Assembly: GCA_020184695.1 (NCBI GenBank)
Contig: JAANOX010000017.1
Span: 124,001-188,000, forward strand
Direction of reading: 5' to 3'
Origin: Histomonas meleagridis 2922-C6/04-290x
Lineage: Eukaryota > Protista > Parabasalia
Length of the DNA stretch: 64,000 nucleotides
This document shows, in pieces, positions 6,963 through 64,000 of the stretch. The position numbers and the translations under genes were made by a program. Position 1 is the stretch's first letter. Each line of letters begins with the position of its first letter. Below the pieces are notes generated by a model. That model was given only the letters and a program-made list of their open reading frames with translations, did no database searches and was not told where the DNA came from.

Positions 6963-7036
6963 AGCCACCGGCGGGACTCGAACCCGCAACCCCAAGATTA
7001 AGAGTCTTATGCTCTAGCCGATTGAGCTACGATGGC
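6963..7036 (-). tRNA. tRNA-Lys(CTT)
   Basis: Reverse complement folds as a cloverleaf: GCCATCG/CGGTGGC acceptor stem, TAAGA-CT-CTT-AA-TCTTG anticodon arm, GGTTCGAGTCC T arm. Confidence 0.95.
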
Positions 7037-7140: not shown

Positions 7141-9684
7141 ATGGAACAGAGGTTAACAAATGAAGAACAAGTGAAATGCCTTCAAGGCCTTGTGTTAATT
7201 CAAAAAATCATACGAGAATTGAATTTTACAAATATCGAGGAGTCAGTAGCAAGGATTTTAAGTTCGTTTAGTAGTAATTCAATAAATTACACCTTATGCA
7301 ATTTAACATACAGATATTTTGTAGCAAGAATACTTGACTTTGATATATGTTTAAATTTTATAAAAGTTATTAATAAACAAAAAAAGACCATACTATTACA
7401 GATCTTTTTACACAATTACTTCTCGATTTAGGTACACAAGAATCAAATTTTTTACTTGAAAAGTTGATCGAAAAAGAAGTGATAAACCCAAATGTAGTTA
7501 AAAACAAGAAAACATTATATTTTATACATTATAAAACTCAAAATGAAATTGAATCATCCCATTTTAATTTTGATCAATTTAATGATGAGATAAAATGTAA
7601 TATTGAAAAGCTATCAAAGAATAATTGGGAACTTCATAAGCAATTAATTAAAGAAGGAGTTAATCCGAATGAAATTGCGAAAATAATTCGAAAAGATGAA
7701 ATAGAAAAACTTCAAGAAATATCATCACAACCAAATTTTGATTTTAGTCAACTAATTAAGCCATCACTTTATGAAAGATATTCATATATTAATCAAAATG
7801 CAGTTACATTAATTGATTATGCAGCATTTTTCGGATCAATTAAATGTTTTAAGTATTTATTATTAAATAATGCAAGGTTAATGAATGCGGGGAAATATGC
7901 AGTTGCAGGTGGAAATCTTGAAATTATTCATTTATGTGAACAAAACCATTCATCATTCTCAAATTCACTTGAAAATGTAATAGAATTTCATCGAAATGAT
8001 ATCTTTGATTATATTTATGAAAATAAAATTTTTGGTACTCCAAATTTTAATCAGTTGGCAAAAAAATGTATTATTTGCAGTAATTATGAATTGTTTTTGT
8101 TTTTTAAAGAAAACGAAAATATAAAATTAGATGGAATTTCTTCTGATATAATAAAAAGTCGTAATATTCTTTTAACCAAATGCTTCCTTGAAAATATTGA
8201 TCTTGAAAAAGCATTTGTTGCTTCTTCTGAAATTGGCAATATAGAAATATTTAAATTACTTCTTGAACAAAAAGGAATTGATATCAATGCTAAAGATATT
8301 TATTTGTTTTATTTAAAATTTATTTTAATAATTTAATATTTCAAAATAATATTTGGAAATTATTTAAATTATTTTATACAGCACTTATGTACGCATCTGA
8401 AAAAGGTCATACAGAAATAGTTAAATTACTTCTTGAACAAAAAAGAATTGATATTAATGCTAAAGACATTTATTTGTTTTATTTAAAATTTATTTTAATA
8501 ATTTTATATTTTTAAATAATATTTGGAAATTATTTAAATTATTTAAAACAGCACTTATTTGTGCATCTGAAAAAGGTCATACAGAAATAGTTAAATTACT
8601 TCTTGAACAAAAAAGAATTAATATTAATACTAGAGATATTTATTTGTTTTATTTAATATTTATTTTAATAATTTTGGATTTCAAAATAATATTTGGAAAT
8701 TATTTAAATTATTTAAAACAGCACTTATTTGTGCATCTGAAAAAGGTCATACAGAAATAGTTAAATTACTTCTTGAACAAAAAAGAATTAATATTAATAC
8801 TAGAGATATTTATTTGTTTTATTTAAAATTTATTTTAATAATTTTATATTTTTAAATAATATTTGGAAATTATTTAAAATATTTAAAACAGCACTTATAT
8901 ACTCATCACAAAAAGGCCATACAGAAATAGTTAAATTACTTCTTGAACAAAAAGGAATTGATATTAATGCTAAAGATATTTATTTGTTTTATTTAATATT
9001 TATTTTAATAATTTTGGATTTCAAAATAATATTTGGAAATTATTTAAATTATTTAAAACAGCACTTATTTGTGCATCTGAAAAAGGTCATACAGAAATAG
9101 TTAAATTACTTCTTGAACAAAAAAGAATTAATATTAATACTAGAGATATTTATTTGTTTTATTTAATATTTATTTTTAATAGTTTTGGATTTCAAAATAA
9201 TATTTGGAAATTATTTAAATTATTTGAAAACAGCACTTATTTGTGCATCTGAAAAAAAGGTCATACAGAAATAGTTAAATTACTTCTTGAACAAAAGAAT
9301 TAATATTAATACTAGAAATATTTATTTGTTTTATTTAATATTTATTTTAATAATTTTTGGATTTCAAAATAATATTTGGAAATTATTTAAATTATTTAAA
9401 ACAGCACTTATTTGTGCATCTGAAAAAGGTCATACAGAAATAGTTAAATTACTTCTTGAACAAAAAAGAATTAATATTAATACTAGAGATATTTATTTGT
9501 TTTATTTAATATTTATTTTAATAATTTTGGATTTCAAAATAATATTTGGAAATAATTTAAATTATTTTGGACAGCACTTATGTATGCATCTAAAAATGAT
9601 CATACAGAAGTAGTTAAATTACTTAAACAAAAAGAAAATGACAACAACACGAAAAAAATTAATTTATCATTATTAAATATATAA
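7141..9684 (+). CDS. DUF3447-like + ankyrin gene 1; 8 inserts, 32 spacers of 17 nt; one frameshift at the A7 run 7379-7385
   Basis: N-terminal LIDYAAFFGSIKCFKYL domain, then TAL..ASEKGHTEIVKLLLEQK.ID/NIN repeats at ~170-nt period (T codons 8378, 8548, 8718, 8888, 9058, 9230, 9401, 9571); TAA at 9682-9684. Confidence 0.8.
8298..9570 (+). other. Eight (17-nt spacer + 1 codon) x4 modules splitting ankyrin hairpin loops
   Basis: Example 8468-8547: ATTTATTTGTTTTATTT-AAA-ATTTATTTTAATAATTT-TAT-ATTTTTAAATAATATTT-GGA-AATTATTTAAATTATTT-AAA gives KD-KYGK-TAL. Confidence 0.9.
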
Positions 9685-10122
9685 ATAAAAGATAAACCTT
9701 AACAATATTTCAAATAGTAAAAGTAAATTTTTGTAATCATTTTTTTCATATTATTATATTTTTGATTTAAATAATCATTAAAAATTATTGTTCATTATCT
9801 TATGAAATAAGGAAATTAAACTAATCAATGAGGCATATTTGGGGCATCCTGATACAGTTTCCTCAACTTTTTAAATTGATATTATCCGTTTCACAACACA
9901 AACAATGTTCAAATCTTCATGCAACAAAACGACATACAATCCACTCGCCCAAATTCGTAATTTTATGAGAGGTGGTGATATGTTCCAACTGAACGGTTTT
10001 TACTCCTAAATTAAAAGATATAAAGCTGCAAGTCTTTTATGGCTCCTTCAGTAATTTTAGTTGAAATGTGTTAATTCTTTTTAATCAGTTTCTAGCCAAA
10101 ATATTAACTTCATAAATATAAA

Positions 10123-10305
10123 CATTCATTTAATAACGCATCACAAAAAGGTTATACAAAAATAGTTAAATTACTTCTTGAACAAATAGGAATTGATATT
10201 AATGCTGAAAATAATATTTATATGTTTTATTTAAAATTACAAGATAAAATTTGGAAATTATTTAAAATATTTTTGACAGCATTTAATATTGTTATCGATA
10301 ACTAA
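10123..10305 (+). pseudogene. Detached ankyrin fragment with three 17-nt spacers
   Basis: ASQKGYTKIVKLLLEQIGIDINAEN-N[17]K[17]G[17]L-TAFNIVIDN*; spacers 10216-10232, 10236-10252, 10256-10272. Confidence 0.7.
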
Positions 10306-14923: not shown

Positions 14924-14998
14924 ATCACCGTGGAACAATAGGTTTAGTTCGTGAGGCTCATAACCTCAAGGTTGGAAGTTCGAGTCTTCCCGGTGGTC
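14924..14998 (+). tRNA. tRNA-Met(CAT)
   Basis: ATCACCG/CGGTGGT acceptor, GAAC/GTTC D stem, TGAGG-CT-CAT-AA-CCTCA anticodon arm, GGAAG-TTCGAGT-CTTCC T arm. Confidence 0.9.
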
Positions 14999-26479: not shown

Positions 26480-26835
26480 CTTGTACGTTAATGTCTTTCG
26501 AGAAGTAATTGAACTGTTTCTGAAAGTGGAAATAAGCGCAGTGTGATATATAAAATAAAACATATAAATATCCTTTGTATAAACATCAGTTCCTTCGTGT
26601 TCAGGAAGTAATTGAACTATTTTTGGGTTAACAAATGAAGATGTAATCACAAGTGCTGTTTAATATGGTTTAATAAAGTTTCAAATAAAACATATAAATA
26701 TTTTTGCATAAACATCAATAGCTTCTTGTTCAAGAGGTAATTGAACTGTTTCTGTGAAACCATTTTCAAATGCTAAAATAAGTGCTGTCCAAAATAATTT
26801 AAATAATATCCAAATATTATTTTCCAAAATAAACA
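26480..26835 (-). pseudogene. Degenerate ankyrin remnant (2-3 units) with residual 17-nt spacers
   Basis: G[TATTATTTAAATTATTT]W-TALILAFENGFTETVQLPLEQEAIDVYAKN[ATTTATATGTTTTATTT]E...TALVITSS... Confidence 0.65.
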
Positions 26836-29206: not shown

Positions 29207-29580
29207 GACAACTTATTTTAGCAATAGTCACTTTTTTCTGAAAATGAAAAAAAAAACGATAGGATGTTTGAATTACATATTGCCATTTTGAGCCTCAAAT
29301 ATTTGTATTAAATCATGTCATTCAAAAATCCGACCCCAGGATCCTATCGGCACATTACTTTTTACTGTGGAGATAACCGACCGTTAAAACCCCGCCAAAA
29401 TAACCGTAAAAGTGGTAGCTCTAAAATGTCACTTTTCTTTAGGCCCAAAAATTTTTCATAAGAGCAAACGGTCATTTTGTGGACTTTCTGTGAAAAATCA
29501 GAGCCGTTTCGATTTAAATATCGCGATATTCATGAATTTTCAAATAAACCGTATCGCGAAATAGTGTTTTTCTCCTTGCA

Positions 29581-32500
29581 ATGGGAAACAACGAAAGCAA
29601 TCCGCCACAACTCATTAGTAATCCAGAATTAAGACAAATAAAATGTCAAAATCCAGAATATATGCAAAGGTTACTATATCTTGAATATTATCTCTTTAAT
29701 CTCAATGACAATAATTTTGAAGATACTGCCTGTAAGGTCCTAGCTTATTTTGATCCAACTTATAGTTTTACTTGGACAGCCATTGTTTTTAATTTAATTT
29801 TTACGTGCTTTCATTCAAATCACGGAAATGATTTCAAAATTTATGTTAACTTTATAATAAACCTTACTGAAAAAATTGGAGACGATCTTCAAATGATGGA
29901 ACGTTTTGTACAATTTCTTTGTGATACAGCACGTTACAAACAAGAAGCAAAATATTTTCTTCAGATGTTAATTGAAAGTGATATTATTAAACCAGAAAAA
30001 GTTTTAAGAATAAGAACGTTATATTTTTCGCATTATAAAACAGAAGCTGCTATTAAAAGATGTGCTAAAGATGTTCCTTTTTATGAGCAATTCTTTAAAT
30101 CATTTGATGAACTTAAGAAAGATAATTGGAAACTACATAAAAACCTTGTTCATGACGGAGTTAATCCCTCCCAAATAGCATTAATTATTCGAAATGACAA
30201 TATTGAAAAACTTCAAGAAATGTCTACACAAGCCAATTTTGACTTTAATCAAAAAATAGAACCATCTCTTTATGAAAGATGTTCTCTTGTTAATCAAAAA
30301 AGTGTATCACTTATTAATTATTCTGCATTTTTCGGATCCGTTAAATGTTTCAAGTTTTTATTGCAAAATGATTGTGATACATCTGATGCATGTAAATATG
30401 CTATTGCAGGAGGAAACTTCGAAATATTACAACTTTGTGAGCAATATCATTTATCGTTTGATAATACAATAGAAACAGCAATTGAATATCATCGGAATCA
30501 AATGATTAAATATCTTTATGAAAATAAAATCGTTATATGTAATGATCTTTCTCAAATAGGATTTTTATGCGTTATTCATAGAAATTATGAAATTCTTGCA
30601 TATTTAGAAAGCTATGGAATGCTTATAAATGATAAAATTATGAATAAGGCAGCTATTATAGGGAATTTATATCTTGTTAAACACTTTGTAGAAGGGAATA
30701 AAATACCAAAAGATATTTTACCATATGCTGCATTTAGTAGAAATGTTGAAGTTGTAAGATATGTTCTTACATTTGAAGAAATTGATCTAAATGCAAAAGA
30801 TATTTATTTGTTTCGCCTGATGTTTTCTTATAGTTTTTAATATTTTTATTTTCCACTTGGAAATTATTTTAATTATTTTATCCTGCATTAATAAATTCTC
30901 AAAGCAGATATAATAAAGAAATTTTTAGTTTGCTTCTAAATCAATATACAATTGATGTTAATATTAGAGATATATTTTTGTATTATATGTAATTTGTTTG
31001 AATGAATTAATATTTTAATTAATATTTATGAAATTTATTCATTTTATTTTATACACCATTTGTTTTTGCTGCTTCTTCAGGTAACACTGAAGCTCTTAGA
31101 TTAATTCTTCAAAAGGAAAATGTAAATGTTAATGCAAAAAATGTTTATTTTGATTCATCAAAGTTTAATATTATAACTTTTAATTTCCTTATATAATTTG
31201 GAATTTCTTTATATAATTACATACAGCGTTATTCCGTGCTTGTTTAAATGGATATCCTGATATCGTAAAAATACTTCTTAATGAATGTAAAATCGATATA
31301 AGAATCAAAAGTATTAAATTTTTTTATTTAATGTTAGTTTTTATGATTTGATATCACTAAAGATTATTTGGATGTTATTTTATTGATTTAAAACTGCACT
31401 TTTCATTGCTGTAGAAATGGGGAGAAATGAAATTGTTGATTTACTTCTTGAACATGGAGGATTTGATGTAAATAGCAGAGATATAAATTAGCTTTATTTA
31501 ATATTTAAAATAATAAATTCTAATTTCATTAAAATATGTGGTGTTTTTTTAATTCTTCTGATTTCCCACTTTACCATGCATGTAATAAAGGATATCTCCA
31601 AATTACCAAAACACTTCTTCAACAAAAGGGAATTAATATTAATGCTAAAAATATTTATTTGTTTAATTTAAAGTTTATTATCAAAAAATAAGGTATTTAT
31701 TTGATATTTTTAGGAAATTGTTTATGATATTTATTACACCACTTATAGCTGCAGCTACACATGGTTATTATGAAATAATTCAATTACTTCTTGAACAAAA
31801 AGGAATTGATGTTAATGCTAAAGATATTTATTTAAATTTATATGATGTTTTTTACAAAACCTTATAGTTAAAATGAATTATAAAATGTTAAATAAAAATA
31901 TTTGAAACAGCATTAATGACTGCAGCTTATAATGGTTTATTAAAAACTACAACAATACTTCTTCAACATAAAGGTATTAATCTAAATGCAAAAATTTGTT
32001 TATTTAATATGATATTTTTTTGGGAATTATGATGTTTAAATATGTTATAACTTGTTTTTTTAAATTAAATAATTCAACAGCACTAATTATAGCAGCTAAA
32101 AAAGGTTATTTTGAATTAGTTAAATTACTTCTTGAACAAAAAGGAATTAATACCAAAATTAAAAATACCGTTACTATTGATAATTTTACATTTCATAACA
32201 ATATTTGGTGTTTATTTTAATCATTTAACACAGCATTTATGGAAGCAGTTGCTCATAATTGGTTGGTAACAGTCAAAATATTCTTAGAAAATAGTAATGT
32301 AGATATTAATGACAAAGGAATTTTAGTTCTTTATTTGAAATTTCTTATAATAATTTCATATTTCAAAATAATGTATAAAATTTATTTTTATTATTTGAAA
32401 CAGCACTTCATAAAGCAATTACAGTACATAATTACGATATGGTTAATCTATTTCTTCAAAGAGGAATTAATATTAATGCGAAAGATGTTTATAAATTTTA

Positions 32501-32966
32501 TTTGAAATTAATAAAAATTATATCTTGTTTCATAGAAATAATTGGAATTTAATCAATTTTTTTGAGACTGCTCTATTCAAAGCAATTCGTTTAAATGAAG
32601 TAAAGATTGCTAACTTACTTCTTCAACAAAATAATATTGAAATAAATGTAAAAAATAACGATTTATTTTTTATGATATTTGATTCAATAATTTGAAGTTT
32701 CAAAATGATATTTGGAATTTTATTATAAAATAAAACACACCTCTTATGATAGCTGCTTACACTGACAATATAGACATCGTTCAGATGCTTCTTGATAAAG
32801 GTGCTAATAAATATGAGAAAAATTTATATTCTTTTAGTATAAAGATTATTTAACTCATTTAAAATTTCATAAAAATTTTTGGAATATCTTCAATTTTTTT
32901 GAAACAGCACTCAACATTGCTCTTAGTAAAGGGCACAATGATATTGTTAAATTAATCAATAACTAA
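29581..32966 (+). CDS. DUF3447-like + ankyrin gene 2; 13 diverged inserts, 51 spacers
   Basis: MGNNES start; 13 stop-free ankyrin segments at ~170-nt period; TAA at 32964-32966. Confidence 0.85.
30802..32903 (+). other. Thirteen 17-nt spacer / single-codon clusters
   Basis: Insert lengths 80,81,80,80,80,83,81,80,63,80,80,80,80; GGN exactly 23 nt before the TAL-position codon in 9 of 13. Confidence 0.88.
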
Positions 32967-33216
32967 CAAATCAAAAATAAATCACGGATAACTTCAATAG
33001 TAAATATTTCGTTGATTATGTCGGTAAATTTTATTAATCTGTATTTTAAAACTATTTTTCATCAAAATAGCAAATTTTACACTTTTCGACATTTTTTTAT
33101 GTTGATATTTTTACATTATTTTAATACTAACTATTTTTCATATTTTAGATTGACTTTCCACTTTAATACTATTCGTGAATTGTCATAATACAAATATTAT
33201 TTAAAAACTTTTTTAT

Positions 33217-36354: not shown

Positions 36355-38702
36355 ATGTCTGAGAATAATATTCAGGAAATATCAACATATTTAACAGAGA
36401 AAATCATTTTTGGTTTAAGCAAAGAAAACACTTCTAAATCTTTGTTAAAAATGATTGAAATATTTGATTATAATTTTCCTCATTCTTCTAATTTAATTAT
36501 TTGTCAAATGCTATATATAGCATTTAAGATAAAAAATGATTTTGATTTATATTTAAACTTTATAAAGGAAATTGAACAATTTGAAGAAACAAATAAAATC
36601 AATTCTGAAATATATGATGTATTCACCAAATTTCTTTTATTTAAAAATTGTTCAACTTCAAATTATCTTCTTGAAAAATTACTCGAAAACAACATAATTG
36701 AACCAAAAGTTGTGTGTAATACCGATAAAATATATTTCTTGCATTATATGACACCTCATGAATTTAATAAATTTTCGTCAAGTTTTTATAGCAATGAAGA
36801 TAGTATTTTTGTTGATCATTATGAAGAACTTTCAAAAAATAATTTTGAGCTTCATAAGAAGTATATTAAAGAAGGAGTTAACCCGAATGAAATAGCGAAA
36901 ATAATTCGAAATGATGAAATCGAAAAACTCCAAGAAATATCATCTCAAGACAATTTTAATTTTAATCAAAAAATTCCAAAATCACCTTATGAAAAATGTT
37001 CATTCGTAAATAAGGAAAATGTTTCATTAATTGACTATGCAGCATTTTTTGGATCAATTAAATGTTTTAAATTTTTACTAATGAATAATGTAAATGTTAA
37101 TAACACAGGTAAATATGCAATTGCAAGTGGAAATCTTGAAATCATTCATTTATGTGAACAAAATAATTCATCATTTGAAGACTCATATAAAACAGCAATT
37201 ATGTTTCATAGAAATGATATCTTTAAATATCTTTATGAAAATAAAATTGGAAAAATTATTAATATAGAAAAGTTAGGTATTATATGTGTTTCATATCATA
37301 ATTATGAAATTTTTTCATTTCTTGAAAAAGAAGGAATGAAGATTACTGATGATATAATGAATGAAGCTGCAAAAATTGGAAATATATTTTTTATCAAATA
37401 TCTCCTAAAAAATAATCAAATTACAAAAAATATATTAAATTATTCATCACAATCAGGAAATTTGGAGCTTGTTAAATATATTATAGAACAAAAAGGAATT
37501 GATATTAATGCTAGAAACATTTATTTGTTTTATTTGATATTTATTTTAATAATTTGATATATCAAAATAATATTTAAAAATTATTGAAAATATTTGATAC
37601 AGCTCTTATGATAGCATCTAATTTTGGTTACACAGATATAGTTAAATTACTTCTTGAACAAAAAGGAATTGATATTAATGCGAAAAATATTTCATTCTTT
37701 TATTTCAAATCTCATGTTTTGTTTTAATTTTTCTAAAGATTAAATGGAATTTAAATAAAATATTACATCTAGCACTTACAGATGCTTATGAATTCGATAA
37801 CAGAAAATTATATTCATTTCTTATTCACAAAAGTTCAGATGATATAAAAGATATAGACATTTACTTATCTTATATAAGTTTTCTTTTAATAATTTATTGA
37901 TAAAGAATATTTGGAAATAATTTTAAACGTTTTATACTGCACTTATATTTGCAACTGCAAAAAACCATAAAGAAATTGTTAAATTACTTCTTGAGCAAAA
38001 AGGAATTGATATTAATACTAAGGATAATATTTTTAATATATATTGGAAATTTTTTATGATAATTTATTATTGCAAAATAATATTTGAAAATTTTTCAAAT
38101 TATTTTATACGGCACTTATGTGGGCATGTATAAAAGGGTATACAAAAATTGTTAAATTATTACTGAAACACGAAATAATTGATATAAATTCTAAAGATGT
38201 TAACATCATTAATTTGTTGTTTAATTCCTTAACATTTTGTTTTAATATAATATTTGGAAATTATTCAAATTATTTCGAACAGCATTTATTTTAGCATCTG
38301 ATTATGGTCATACAGAAACTGTTAAATTACTTCTTGAAAAAGAATGCATTGATGTTAATATTCAAGACATTTATTTGCTTTATTTAATATTTATATTAAT
38401 AATTTAAAATCCCAAAATAATAATTAAAAATTATTTAGATTATTTCGAACAGCACTTATGTGGGCATCTTATTATGGTCATACAGAAATAGTTAAATTAC
38501 TTCTTGAAAAAGAATGTATTGATGTTAATATTCAAGACATTTATTTGCTTTATTTAATATTTATATTAATAATTTAAAATCCCAAAATAATAATTAAAAA
38601 TTATTTAGATTATTTCGAACAGCACTTATATATGCATCTAGAAATGGTCATACAGAAATAGTTAAACTAATTCAATGCTATATGCAGACTTATAATATAT
38701 AA
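36355..38702 (+). CDS. DUF3447-like + ankyrin gene 3; 7 inserts, 28 spacers
   Basis: EGVNPNEIAKIIRND...LIDYAAFFGSIKCFKFL; T codons at 37599, 37769, 37936, 38109, 38279, 38449, 38619; TAA at 38700-38702. Confidence 0.85.
37519..38618 (+). other. Seven 17-nt spacer / single-codon clusters
   Basis: Decodes to RN-DDKD, KN-QNGH, ID-K-GY, KD-NEIEY, KD-VFGR and QD-NKKR (twice). Confidence 0.85.
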
Positions 38703-59982: not shown

Positions 59983-62900
59983 TCAGTGTTTTTCAAGAAG
60001 ATCTTCTTCATCAGAGTTTTTGATGTCTAATCCTATTTTATGTGCTGGATCAAATTATTTGTGTAAATGCTAAATATTGTTTTAAAACGAAGAATTATTG
60101 TAATGACCTGTTTGCAAAGCAAATAAATATCTATAGCATTGATATCAATTCCTTCTTTCTCAAGAAGCATTTTAACTATTTCAGTATGACCTTTCCTATA
60201 TGCATATTTAAGTGCTGTGCTAAAATATTGAAATATTTCCCAAATATTATTTTAAAATGCTAAGGTAATTATTTAAACAATGAATAAATCTAATAAATAT
60301 CTATAGCATTTATGTCAATTCCTTCTTGTTTAATAAGCAATTTAACTATTTCAACACGACCTTTTGTGGATGCACAAATAAGTGCTGTATTAAATTATTG
60401 ATATATTTTCCAAATGTTATTTTAAAGCACTAAAATACTTGTTTAAACGTTACATAAATCTAATAAATATTTTTAGCATTGATGTCAATTCCTTTTTGCT
60501 CAAGAAGCATTTTAACTATTTCTGTGTGACCATTTTTAGATGCATAAATAAGTGATGTATTAAATTATTGATATATTTTTCAAATATTATTTTAAAGCAC
60601 TAAAATTTTTAATTCAGCAATGAAAAAAACGAAATAATATTTTTTGCATTAATGTTAATTCCTTTTTGCTCAAGAAGTATTTTAACAATTTCTATATTAC
60701 CATTTTCAGATGCCAAAATAAGTGGTGTTTCAAATAATTCACAAAAATTCCAAATTTTGATTTGAAAGAAAAAATTATTTGAGAAAACCATAAATAAAAT
60801 AAAAATACATTCTGCAAATTAACATCAATCCCTTTATACTTAAGAAGTAATTTTGATGTTTCATTTTGAAAGCTTGATATAGCATGAAGAAAAGCTGTAT
60901 TAAGTTATAGAAATAAACTCCATTTGTTATTAGAGATCATTGAAATATTAAAATAAAATCTATGTAAAACATACAAATATCTTTTGCATTAACATGAATT
61001 TCTTCATGCTCAAGAAGTAATTTAACCATTTCTATATTACCATTTTGAGATGCATACATAAGTGCTGTTTTAAATTATTTAAATAATTTTCAAATATTGT
61101 TTAGTAACATAAAACTATTAAAATAAATCCAAAATAAAACAAATAAATAAATTGTTTCTTATTGACATCAATTCCTTTTTGTGCAATAAGTAAATTAAAT
61201 ATTTCGGTAAAATTGTGACTAGCTGCAGTAATAAGTTCATATCCAAATATTGTTTTAAAATACAAAATAAAATCAATTAACAAGATTAATGTCGATAACA
61301 TTTCCTTTATATTTAAGAATTAATTTAACAATATCCGTTCTACCATTTAAAGAAGCACATTCAAATAGCCTACTATCAAATAAAATAAAGATATTTTATT
61401 AATATCAAATTTGTTATGTTTAAGAAATAATTTGAGTATTGGAATTCTAAATCCTACAAAGTTAAATGCTGTATTAAATTTTTTGAATAATTTCCAAATA
61501 TAGTTTTAGTACATGAAATTATTTAAACGAATTTGATGCATAATAAATGTATATTTTTAGCATTAATATCAATTCCTTTTTTTTCAAGAAGTAATTTAAC
61601 TATTTCGTGTTCATTTTGTTTTAAAGCTATAATAAGTGCTGTTTCAAATAATTTAAATAATTTCCAAATATTATTTTGAAATCCAAAATATATAAAATAA
61701 ATATTAATTAAGAAAAACAAAAATTTTCAAAATTAACATCAATTTCTTCTTGTTCAAGAAGAAAATTTGCCATTTCAATATCACCTTTTTTTAATGCGAG
61801 CATTAATGTTGAGTTAATTGATATAAACAAACACCAAATTTTACGTTAAAAATCGGAATTATTATTACATACCTCAAACATAATAAATAAATATCCCTAC
61901 TATTTATATTAGCATATCCATTCTCAATAAGAAATTTGAGAGTATCTATATATCCATTTTTATATACACCGCATATTGATACTTTAAATATATCCAATAA
62001 TTTCCAAATATTATTATGAAACCCTAAATTATTGGAAAAAATTTCCATTAAAAGAATGAAACATCTCTATCATCATATATTCCTTGATGTTTAAGAAATA
62101 AATCAATTATTTCGCTATGACCATTTTTAGATGCTAACATAAATGCTGTATAAAACAATATAAATAATTTCCAAATATTATTTTGAAATCCAAAATTAAT
62201 AAAATAATTTCTAAATAAATTAATTATATATCACTTGCATTTATATCAATTCCTTCTTGTTCAAGAAGTAACTTAACTATTTTTGTATATCCTTTTTTAG
62301 ATGCAATTAGAAGTGCTGTCTTAAACATTACTTTGAAATATAAAATATATAAAATAAAAATGAATAAAGAAAAATAAAAATTTTCAAAATTAACATCAAT
62401 TTCTTTTTGTTTAAGAAGTAGTTTAACCATTTCTATATTTCCTTTTTTAGATGAATAAAGAAGTGCTTGATTAAAACATTTGAATATTTACCAAATATGA
62501 TGTTAAAATATCAAAGAAATTAAGGATATATCGAATAAATGAAATTAATTCCTTCAAAACTTATGTCAGTACTTTGATCAAGAATTGTTTTGACAAGTTC
62601 AGCGTGGCCATTTTCATATCCAAAAATAAATTCTATTAAAAATATTTCGAATGATTTTCAAATATTTTCATTAAATCCAAAAATATTTATGAAATATTTA
62701 TAACAAACAAATAAATATTTTTAATATTGGGATGATTTCTTTTATAATCAAGAAGTAATTTAATTGTTTCTTGATGATTATTTTCATATGCATACATAAT
62801 TGATGTTTTAAATAATTTGTATAATTACCAAAAATTAATTTCATATTTCAAATTATTAATATAAAAATTATATAAAATAAGTTAATTGATTTAAAATTAA

Positions 62901-64000
62901 TGTCAATTTCTTTACGTTCAAGAAGTAATTTAACTATTTCACAATAACCATTGATAGATGCTAAAATAAGAGCTGTATTAAATATTTTTAGTTAACACCA
63001 AAATTATATTTTAAATTCGAAATTAATAAGATAAATTTTAATTAAAATAAAATAAAATCATGTAAATTGACATCAATCTTTTTATGATTAAGAAGTAATT
63101 TAACAATTCCGATATAGTTATTTTTAATAGCAAACATTAGTGCTGTGTAAAATAGTTTAATTAATTACCAGTTATTATAATGAAATTTTATTTGATTTAA
63201 AGAAAAATTAAAACTAACAAATAAAAATTTGCTGCATTCACATTAATCCTTTTATAATTAACAAGCAATTTAACGATTTCAATGTATCCATTTTGTGCTG
63301 CATCAATAAGTGCTGTCCAAAATAATATGTAAATATTCTAAATATTAAAAAGAAACTCCAAATAATTAAAATCTAAAATTAAAATAAAGAAAGAAAAATT
63401 TACTGCATTAACATTAATTCTTTTCTGCTCAAGAAGTAATTTAACAATTTCAATGTTATTATTATGAACTGCCATAAAAAATGCAGTATAAAATCTATCA
63501 AATGAATTCCAAAAATGTTATTGAAATTCCAAATGATAAAAACGATTTATGTTTTTTTCATTTATTTTAATACTTCTTTGTTCAAGAAGAAATTTAACTA
63601 CATCAAAATAACCTTCACTACATGCAACAATTAATGGTGTATAAAATTATCAAAATAAATTTTATTACATATTTTAAAACTCCAAATTATTAAAATATTT
63701 TTTACTAAATACAATGAAACATATTTTATATTTACATCAAATTTTCCTTTATCAAGAAGTAGTTTAACAATTTCTTTGTTTCCTGATCGAGCTGCTGACA
63801 TTAAAGCCTCTTTTGGTATTTCATTTCCATTTGAAAAATGTTTAAATAGAAATATATTTCCACTTTCGACTGATTCTATTATCAATTCTTTAAAATTTAA
63901 TTTCTTTTCTGTCAAAAAAGACAAAATTTCATAATTGTTATATATAATACATTTTTTAGCTAATTCAGTCAAATCTTCTTCTTTAATGTTTTCATTATCA
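59983..64000 (-). CDS. DUF3447-like + ankyrin gene 4 (5' end outside the window); 23 inserts, about 85 spacers
   Basis: Frame open to position 64000 (DNENIKEEDLTELAKKC...); ankyrin segments at ~170-nt period; TGA at 59985-59983. Confidence 0.85.
60049..63720 (-). other. Twenty-three 17-nt spacer / single-codon clusters
   Basis: Decodes to AN-NKGY, HD-KRGN, KS-NEGK, EG-DDGN, SD-RWGY, RD-ERGN, KD-RNGN, QN-MFGE, KN-NSGN and others. Confidence 0.88.

Follow-up and report, generated by a model that had tools for sequence, protein, structure and literature searches.

Inserts that break the frame of a coding sequence and are absent from the protein are known from T4 gene 60, the 'byps' of Magnusiomyces and the internal eliminated sequences (IES) of ciliates. 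Bulge-helix-bulge introns, the IRE1 substrates HAC1 and XBP1, and the non-conventional introns of Euglena are short, do not follow the GT-AG rule and are cut and religated; they need a defined fold. Introns of the Trichomonas/Giardia type are few; their 5' site is GTAYGT, and their branch and 3' signals are fused into one motif, ACTAACACACAG. The micro-exons of animals and plants may be as small as 3 nucleotides (nt), leave the reading frame undisturbed and in many cases code for surface loops. The spliceosomal introns of Stentor coeruleus are 15 nt in 92.8% of cases and 16 nt in 7.2%, with an A at position 10 of 15 (PMC9505925). In some tunicates (Fritillaria and others) 95% of introns are non-GT/AG (PMC13326754), and in Amoebophrya, which has introner elements and of whose introns only those of 40-1000 bp were analysed, more than 60% are non-canonical (PMC7789003). 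According to the Histomonas genome paper no gene has more than one intron, and ankyrin genes go unmentioned there (PMC8529796). The subject of the present analysis is an ankyrin gene, gene 2, on a 64,000-nt stretch of DNA from Histomonas meleagridis 2922-C6/04-290x (assembly GCA_020184695.1, contig JAANOX010000017.1, positions 124,001 to 188,000 of the forward strand), hereafter the window. The overall best reading, to which we give a probability of about 0.8, is that gene 2 is an expressed gene interrupted by ultra-short, length-ruled, non-canonical intron-like inserts that are removed from its RNA.

The spacers, as the removed pieces are called here, are like the Stentor introns in being ultra-short and AU-rich, in their tight length (17 nt in 49/51, 18 nt in two) and in having a fixed A (position 14 of 17); unlike them, they show canonical ends in 0/51 cases, stand in tandem with 3-nt exons between them and occur in ankyrin loops only. 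With the tunicate and Amoebophrya introns they share precise removal at the RNA level and a large-scale breach of the GT-AG rule, but those introns are of ordinary, variable length, whereas here the length is fixed at 17 nt and the exons are single codons; many Amoebophrya elements also contain hairpin-forming repeats, both inverted and direct, and neither a hairpin nor a conserved structure was found here. One-codon exons that preserve the frame recall micro-exons; those stand isolated between long canonical GT-AG introns and are often alternative, in contrast to the three or four in a row, 17 nt apart, in every repeat of a gene family. Introns of parabasalids and diplomonads come from the same lineage and are likewise removed from pre-mRNA, yet their ACTAACACACAG motif is absent from gene 2. 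Unlike structure-defined introns, the inserts show no conserved pairs (24 inserts) and fold no better than shuffles. Bypass elements are kept in the mRNA, whereas the RNA here is without spacers; ciliate IES are removed from the DNA, whereas the DNA contigs here keep the spacers and unspliced RNA exists.

The window is AT-rich eukaryotic DNA with a G+C content (GC) of 20-41% and long open reading frames (ORFs) in the standard code. Gene 2 lies on the + strand with its ORF start at 29581 and its stop at 32964-32966; it consists of a 407-codon N-terminal part followed by 13 ankyrin exons (87-90 nt each between inserts). The N-terminal exon belongs to the Pfam profile DUF3447 (6e-11) and also matches Ank_2 (1e-8); the closest named relatives are Histomonas meleagridis proteins with 47% identity. 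Single 30-residue exons score 22-34 bits against Pfam Ank (PF00023; cut-off 21.1) and are therefore members of that family, and each covers Ank positions 4-32 of 33, so that positions 33 and 1-3 are left over for the missing loop; the third of these four positions is a conserved Gly in the Ank consensus. Removal of all spacers yields one ORF of 838 codons with 0 internal stops, in which repeat starts are spaced 33-35 residues apart; the decoded protein thus has the ankyrin spacing of ~33 residues and the loop x-x-G-x-T. The RNA data used throughout are contigs of three runs (X4, X5 and X6), with one DNA contig set as control. The DNA runs in which the window occurs date from 2021 and represent two samples of one organism, which is in keeping with the published genomes of virulent and attenuated H. 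meleagridis (PMC8529796). The layout of the gene in window coordinates is as follows.

29508-33018 (+): extent of the transcript in RNA-run contigs; X5 record 16 ends at 33018 and continues with 24 unaligned letters, possibly poly(A)
29581-30801 (+): N-terminal exon, 407 codons, uninterrupted, with DUF3447 and an ankyrin-like region (ORF, Pfam); RNA contigs cross it with 0 gaps
30802-30881 (+): insert 1, 80 nt; kept 30819-21, 30839-41, 30859-61 and 30879-81 = DNGY; four 17-nt spacers
30882-30971 (+): ankyrin exon 1, 30 codons; in RNA contigs
30972-31052 (+): insert 2, 81 nt; kept 30989-91, 31009-11, 31030-32 and 31050-52 = VNEY; spacers of 17, 17, 18 and 17 nt
31053-31142 (+): ankyrin exon 2; Pfam Ank positions 4-32; in RNA
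31143-31222 (+): insert 3, 80 nt; kept 31160-62, 31180-82, 31200-02 and 31220-22 = KLGH
31223-31312 (+): ankyrin exon 3; in RNA contigs
31313-31392 (+): insert 4, 80 nt; kept 31330-32, 31350-52, 31370-72 and 31390-92 = NDGK
31393-31482 (+): ankyrin exon 4; in RNA contigs
31483-31562 (+): insert 5, 80 nt; kept 31500-02, 31520-22, 31540-42 and 31560-62 = NLGD
31563-31652 (+): ankyrin exon 5; Pfam Ank 3.8e-6; in RNA
31653-31735 (+): insert 6, 83 nt; kept 31670-72, 31690-92, 31710-15 (a 6-nt piece) and 31733-35 = KKLGI
31736-31825 (+): ankyrin exon 6; Pfam Ank 2e-8
31826-31906 (+): insert 7, 81 nt; kept 31844-46, 31864-66, 31884-86 and 31904-06 = DINE; spacers of 18, 17, 17 and 17 nt
31907-31993 (+): ankyrin exon 7, 29 codons
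31994-32076 (+): insert 8, 83 nt; kept 32011-13, 32031-33, 32051-53 and 32071-76 = DDLNS; four 17-nt spacers
32077-32166 (+): ankyrin exon 8; Pfam Ank
32167-32229 (+): insert 9, 63 nt; first codon 32167-69 joined to the exon, then three spacers; kept = TYGN
32230-32319 (+): ankyrin exon 9; in RNA records 10 and 14
32320-32399 (+): insert 10, 80 nt; kept = EHKE, without Gly
32400-32486 (+): ankyrin exon 10, 29 codons
32487-32566 (+): insert 11, 80 nt; kept = ELGE
32567-32656 (+): ankyrin exon 11
32657-32736 (+): insert 12, 80 nt; kept = DEGN
32737-32823 (+): ankyrin exon 12, 29 codons
32824-32903 (+): insert 13, 80 nt; kept = KKGE
32904-32966 (+): last ankyrin exon, 20 codons and the TAA stop (32964-32966)

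An earlier sequence-only reading had proposed that each insert is a run of 17-nt spacers separated by kept triplets (a 17+3 grid), and its decoded loops are reproduced in 13/13 inserts (DNGY, VNEY, KLGH, NDGK, NLGD, KKLGI, DINE, DDLNS, TYGN, EHKE, ELGE, DEGN, KKGE). Taken from the exon boundaries, the insert lengths are 80, 81, 80, 80, 80, 83, 81, 83, 63, 80, 80, 80 and 80 nt; those given earlier agree for 12/13, the difference lying in insert 8, which had been put at 80 nt and measures 83. This is a matter of bookkeeping, as exon 7 lacks one codon, that for Asp, which stands behind the first spacer; the parse of insert 8 with spacers of 18 and 16 nt is replaced by four 17-nt spacers, which fit better (Leu = CTT; kept pieces of 3, 3, 3 and 6 nt). 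With this correction 49/51 spacers of the gene are 17 nt and 2/51 are 18 nt (inserts 2 and 7), and the kept pieces are 3 nt except for two of 6 nt. Kept pieces hence vary by 3 and spacers by 1, which is the pattern expected if the kept pieces are translated and the spacers removed. Gly is the third of the four kept codons in 9/13 inserts, and the GG said to lie 23 nt upstream of the Thr-position codon is found there in the same proportion (9/13), against only 0.26% of triplet starts within spacers. The kept codons are free of stops, as had been claimed (0/54; chance ~0.013).

A stop-count scan over grids had been set as a test beforehand, and it did not give the sharp optimum expected: nine grids have 0 stops, including s = 15, r = 2. 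The sharp optimum at 17+3 was instead reached with an independent spacer matrix that uses no coding interpretation, a position matrix trained on the spacers of the other window genes and then scanned over gene 2; it scores +210.9 at period 20 and offset 0, and at most -59 at every other offset (-10 to +9) and period (14-26). Column statistics of 25 inserts of exactly 80 nt show the same periodicity, with T at 17/37/57/77, R (a purine) at 1/21/41/61 and GG at 58-59. Variants of insert length are whole units, as the 63-nt insert has one 17-mer less and the 83-nt inserts one codon more. Nearly all loops in the window have four spacers and a few have three; a loop with two spacers (46 nt) is present on a named H. 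meleagridis contig (L004, 5895-5940; GCA_020186115.1, WSYJ01000138.1). A loop profile built from independent uninterrupted ankyrin proteins comprised 11 loops, too few for a useful score.

The removal of the spacers is seen in the RNA contigs. These begin at 29508 (X4), 29608 (X5) and 29603 (X6) and are collinear with the window to 30801 with 0 mismatches; they continue in pieces at 30879-30971, 31050-31142, 31219-31313, 31390-31483, 31559-31653 and 31733-31808 (the last in X6 only), and the match to the window exons has 0 mismatches over ~1.8 kb. The DNA control is a collinear 2373-nt contig in which the inserts are present. At junctions 1-6 the letters left unaligned between pieces number 9, 9, 8, 8, 7 and 11; the RNA replaces each of inserts 1-6 by exactly 12 nt (15 nt at insert 6), and the nucleotides missing are 68, 69, 68, 68, 68 and 68. 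The 17+3 decode predicts 12/12 piece ends, as placed by greedy alignment, and 6/6 counts of unaligned letters; this match includes one-base extensions that occur where a codon letter happens to equal the spacer letter beside it. Per loop, the RNA thus lacks pieces that add up to 68-69 nt, and the ankyrin frame is restored by the 12 or 15 nt that stay. Further downstream, the RNA piece at insert 9 begins at 32226, one base upstream of the last triplet, as the decode predicts, and the spliced form at insert 13 is represented by a contig alignment that begins at the predicted 32901 (X5 record 16); at insert 8 the RNA depth in its bin is 0-56, compared with 1103 in DNA.

Word counts give the same picture. 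RNA runs hold 0.53-0.59 of the 31-mers sampled from gene 2, where removal of all spacers predicts 0.60 and retention of all of them 0.98; in the array at 60200-63720 the RNA share is 0.25-0.30 (0.29 predicted) versus 0.75-0.81 in DNA. At the level of the gene family, loose ends in RNA read ...GCTAAAGAT AAA AAT GGA AAA ACAG (that is, ...GCT AAA GAT AAA AAT GGA AAA ACA G), whereas DNA loose ends at the same anchor run on into the first spacer, ...AAT ATTTATTTAATTT. A search of the protein collection for an mRNA-derived protein of gene 2 gave only paralogues with 41-47% identity, all of which end at a spacer.

The spacers of gene 2 are T-rich and nearly without G or C, with C making up 5% of their letters and termini that are mostly AT..TT and GT..TT. 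Of the 49 spacers that measure 17 nt, 47 start with A or G (p 1e-17), 40-44 have T at each of positions 2-4, 37 have A at position 14 (p 5e-10) and 44 end in T at position 17; T is conserved at 15-17, and the 5' end reads R-T-T-T with W (A or T) at position 5 and T at 6-8. The statement that the spacer sequence has fully diverged was too strong, since the termini are conserved and the interiors of same-rank spacers are more alike (identity 0.51) than those of different rank (0.42; permutation p < 0.0005), the latter being close to the composition expectation. Normalised excess identity, computed over 26 units from five genes, is 0.38 for all spacer positions and 0.34 for spacer interiors, compared with 0.30 at third and 0.64 at second codon positions of exons and 0.20 in the micro-codons, as the kept triplets may be called; spacer interiors drift to about the same degree as synonymous sites, the termini stay conserved, and variability is highest in the columns of the loop codons. 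The young, near-identical repeats of gene 1, another gene of the window (8298-9400), vary in 6/12 micro-codon columns and 3/68 spacer columns (p = 2e-4), so that loop residues there change faster than the surrounding inserts.

Repeats of gene 2 share 34% protein identity, and their third-position identity is 0.50 against 0.41 expected from composition. Neutral DNA gains indels along with substitutions; the persistence of 17 nt in 49/51 spacers despite near-saturated third positions therefore argues for selection on length. Codon-position identity between the repeats is 0.67 at second, 0.48 at first and 0.50 at third positions, and this pattern, together with the intact frame, shows constraint. 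The ratio of non-synonymous to synonymous differences (pN/pS) between the repeats is 0.88 with pS saturated at 0.49, a value that between old paralogous repeats is judged uninformative and no refutation of selection. A close orthologue of gene 2 was not found, the metagenome scan giving one distant relative with 32% identity; relatives in ENA are at most 61% identical to any window gene, and among them there is no close orthologue for a corresponding rate ratio (dN/dS) of the micro-codons. The proposal of long-term selection on length and triplets, as opposed to recent duplication or decay, is supported by the RNA junctions, the Ank positions, the invariant length at 34% identity and the matrix optimum.

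From these results a mechanism may be proposed in which the four-residue hairpin loop (x-x-G-x) of every repeat would be written as single codons, each preceded by a U-rich intervening sequence of 17 nt (rarely 18 nt) with the consensus R-T-T-T ... A-T-T-T. Individual 17-mers would be taken out by intron-like cut-and-join, governed by a strict length ruler and by weak terminal signals, namely a purine at +1, an A at -4 and a 3' T; removal would be independent of the spacer interior, whose drift is close to that of synonymous sites. The units probably originated a single time, in an ancestral ankyrin repeat, and spread by repeat and gene duplication; this would account most simply for their confinement to ankyrin loops, for their placement in phase 0 and for consensus sequences that are specific to rank and shared between genes.

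Several points weigh against this reading. The RNA runs carry the label 'RNA?', which is a guess, and consist of assembler contigs rather than reads; the gene 2 junctions covered by RNA pieces are 1-6, 9 (one side) and 13. We infer the identity of gene 2's retained letters with the grid triplets, and hence its single-codon layout, from boundary letters, counts, composition and the family-level RNA strings. Under any boundary that gives the same product, 0/51 spacers have GT-AG, GC-AG or AT-AC ends; gene 2 has no match to the trichomonad-type 3' motif ACTAACACACAG even with 2 mismatches allowed, and parabasalid genomes are reported to be intron-poor (PMC8529796). The spacer motif is also not confined to spacers: 27 kb of other coding sequence contain 37 spacer-like 17-mers whose score reaches or exceeds the median of true spacers, and comparison with synonymous shuffles shows no depletion of such 17-mers (z = +0.9). 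A 17-mer of this kind lies within gene 2 itself.

30089-30105 (+): decoy, a spacer-like 17-mer that is not removed (matrix score 10.1, above the median of true spacers); the RNA is collinear here

The retention of this decoy in RNA indicates that a 17-mer alone does not specify removal; the tandem arrangement or the ankyrin context probably contributes to specificity.

Compared with the signals of known intron classes, the spacers of gene 2 lack the U2-type termini (GT/GC..AG). The U12-type consensus is RTATCCTT at the 5' end with a TCCTTRAY branch site; with their R-T-T-T 5' end, 5% C and no AT..AC termini the spacers do not belong to the AT-AC class. Across the window the ACTAACACACAG motif has three matches at two mismatches, equal to the chance expectation, so that the spacers also fall outside the parabasalid/diplomonad type. 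RNAalifold on 24 aligned inserts with flanks gives 0 consensus pairs, and single folds of inserts against shuffles have z-scores of -1.0 to +0.8, showing no extra stability; the conserved fold of bulge-helix-bulge, IRE1-type or Euglena non-conventional introns is thus not found. A near-invariant tiny length and a fixed-position A of the Stentor type are present, the A at position 14 (37/49) being a candidate branch point, but the GU-AG ends are not. Each described intron class tested therefore has defining features, of sequence or of structure, that the spacers lack.

The machinery that would carry out the removal is the part of the account on which the alternatives survive best. A divergent spliceosome working at minimal intron size is slightly favoured, owing to the Stentor-like tight length with a fixed 3'-proximal A and to the existence of spliceosomes that handle mostly non-GT-AG introns. 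A dedicated non-spliceosomal pathway acting on the same anatomy at the RNA level, for example a ruler-type endonuclease with an RNA ligase or a factor that recognises the 20-nt periodic U-rich array, is somewhat less probable and has to be taken seriously. Intron-poor protists usually demand strong splice signals. Here 51/51 spacers are without canonical termini and without a parabasalid-type intron motif, tandem inserts are separated by exons of 3 nt, the 17-mer motif does not suffice (the decoy at 30089 is kept, and there is no avoidance), the system is confined to ankyrin loops within the window and the genome is reported to be intron-poor (PMC8529796), all of which would suit such a pathway. 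Forms of it that depend on structure, such as bulge-helix-bulge, IRE1-type or stem-guided cleavage, are opposed by the lack of conserved structure, and a sequence-specific guide RNA pairing with the spacer body is opposed by the diverged interiors of gene 2 spacers, which are still removed; the tight length and fixed-position A resemble the minimal spliceosomal introns of Stentor (PMC9505925), and tunicate spliceosomes process mostly non-GT-AG introns (PMC13326754). The further step, that the 17-nt units constitute a new class of intervening sequence whose non-spliceosomal machinery measures length and reads the +1 purine and the 3' A-T-T-T in a 20-nt periodic array, we consider rather unlikely.

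The remaining rivals concern the anatomy or the RNA itself. It is very unlikely that the RNA comes from a separate spacer-free DNA copy, either a retrocopy or the product of programmed DNA elimination, with the spacer locus being silent or germline-like. Contigs do lose rare variants, which leaves some room for such a copy, but unspliced RNA contigs are present at insert 12 (32627-32762; X4 and X5) and insert 13 (32794-32930; X4 record 12), and with an RNA depth of 0 in the intergenic bin 33083-33200 they indicate that the spacer-bearing locus is transcribed and that precursor and product coexist. The RNA contig also matches the window exons without a mismatch over its ~1.8 kb, and the spacers are present in the DNA contigs of two samples, in the named NCBI assembly and in a metagenome scaffold. 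Inserts 12 and 13 have the weakest first spacers of gene 2 by the matrix (-0.4 and -1.7, insert 13 being the weakest); a link between the strength of the terminal motif and the efficiency of removal is suggestive only, and concerns a subset of contigs.

Still less probable is a layout in which each insert consists of two larger introns around one 9-nt micro-exon, or in which the 9 letters have some other source outside the grid. The gene 2 RNA coordinates would allow it, since they fix only the number of retained letters and the first and last of them; a contiguous 9-nt block before GGA would however read ...ATTTGGA, and the RNA family strings have the grid codons there, in the form ...TATGGA and ...AATGGA. 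The RNA consensus AAA TAT GGA AAA ACAGCACTT is the product predicted for the window units 8468-8547 and 8808-8887 and contradicts such a block. The period-20 signals (R at 1/21/41/61, T at 17/37/57/77) with the sharp matrix optimum, natural variants that gain or lose exactly 17 or 3 nt, and the young-repeat variation that sits on grid triplets (6/12 versus 3/68 spacer columns, p = 2e-4) all speak against it as well. The least credible account, and a very unlikely one, is that the mRNA retains the inserts and the ribosome bypasses them, or that gene 2 is a decaying pseudogene whose RNA joins are artefacts of reverse-transcriptase template switching or of assembly. Repeat genes do yield rare non-canonical pseudo-junctions, such as the 93-nt 'introns' of Giardia ankyrin genes in ~0.5-13% of reads (PMC10711314), but the dominant RNA contigs of all three runs lack the spacers at every visible junction, precisely and in frame, and so do not keep the insert in mature mRNA as bypass requires, the share of words that RNA lacks is the one expected if all spacers go, each removed piece is 17 nt long rather than a whole repeat and is without the flanking direct repeats that template switching needs, and the exons hold an open 838-codon frame in ~24% GC DNA.

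No published description of such a system of single codons and 17-nt inserts was found in the literature searched. If the removal of intron-like 17-mers from gene 2 is correct, it would represent a new extreme of gene structure, with runs of single-codon exons between 17-nt inserts that have no canonical splice signals, in an organism described as almost intron-free, and it would make testable the question of how RNA processing sets cut sites by a length ruler and 3-4 weakly conserved bases; gene 2 is the informative case, as its interiors have drifted and its spacers are still removed. The x-x-G-x hairpin residues of ankyrin repeats belong to the target-binding surface; since the kept pieces are single codons, the frame survives whichever of them are skipped, and the layout could allow frame-safe variation of these residues. 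A parasite-specific RNA-processing step could also serve as a diagnostic marker or a drug target. Public gene models of this ankyrin family are wrong, and the ankyrin repertoire of the poultry pathogen is largely unannotated and missed by proteomic searches.

The same architecture is present elsewhere. A 170-nt period (90+80) recurs in other ankyrin arrays of the window, of which there are at least four; they include those at 8211-10206, 37453-38672 and 60135-63807, with a fragment at 26570-26788. A metagenome relative with 46% identity (L001, an ENA scaffold) has 80-nt inserts at 1594-1673 and 1767-1846 that decode to SSGY and YGGE, and the system is therefore not limited to one assembly. Public gene models, namely P0008 and P0009 (NCBI Histomonas) and P0001-P0007 (metagenome), end by reading into the first spacer; the ankyrin exons behind P0008 are unannotated (GCA_020186115.1, WSYJ01000138.1; L004 4001-6100).

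The fragment at 26570-26788 (-) is a short decayed ankyrin fragment with a 39-nt partial insert, just downstream of a 2572-codon HECT-like ORF, and is probably a pseudogene remnant. The 170-bp unit of all arrays, in which T-tracts are phased 13 nt and 7 nt apart by turns, is near the nucleosome repeat and helical phasing, which may be a coincidence. The sole Rfam matches in the window are two tRNA genes, Lys-CTT at 6963-7036 (-) and Met-CAT at 14924-14998 (+).

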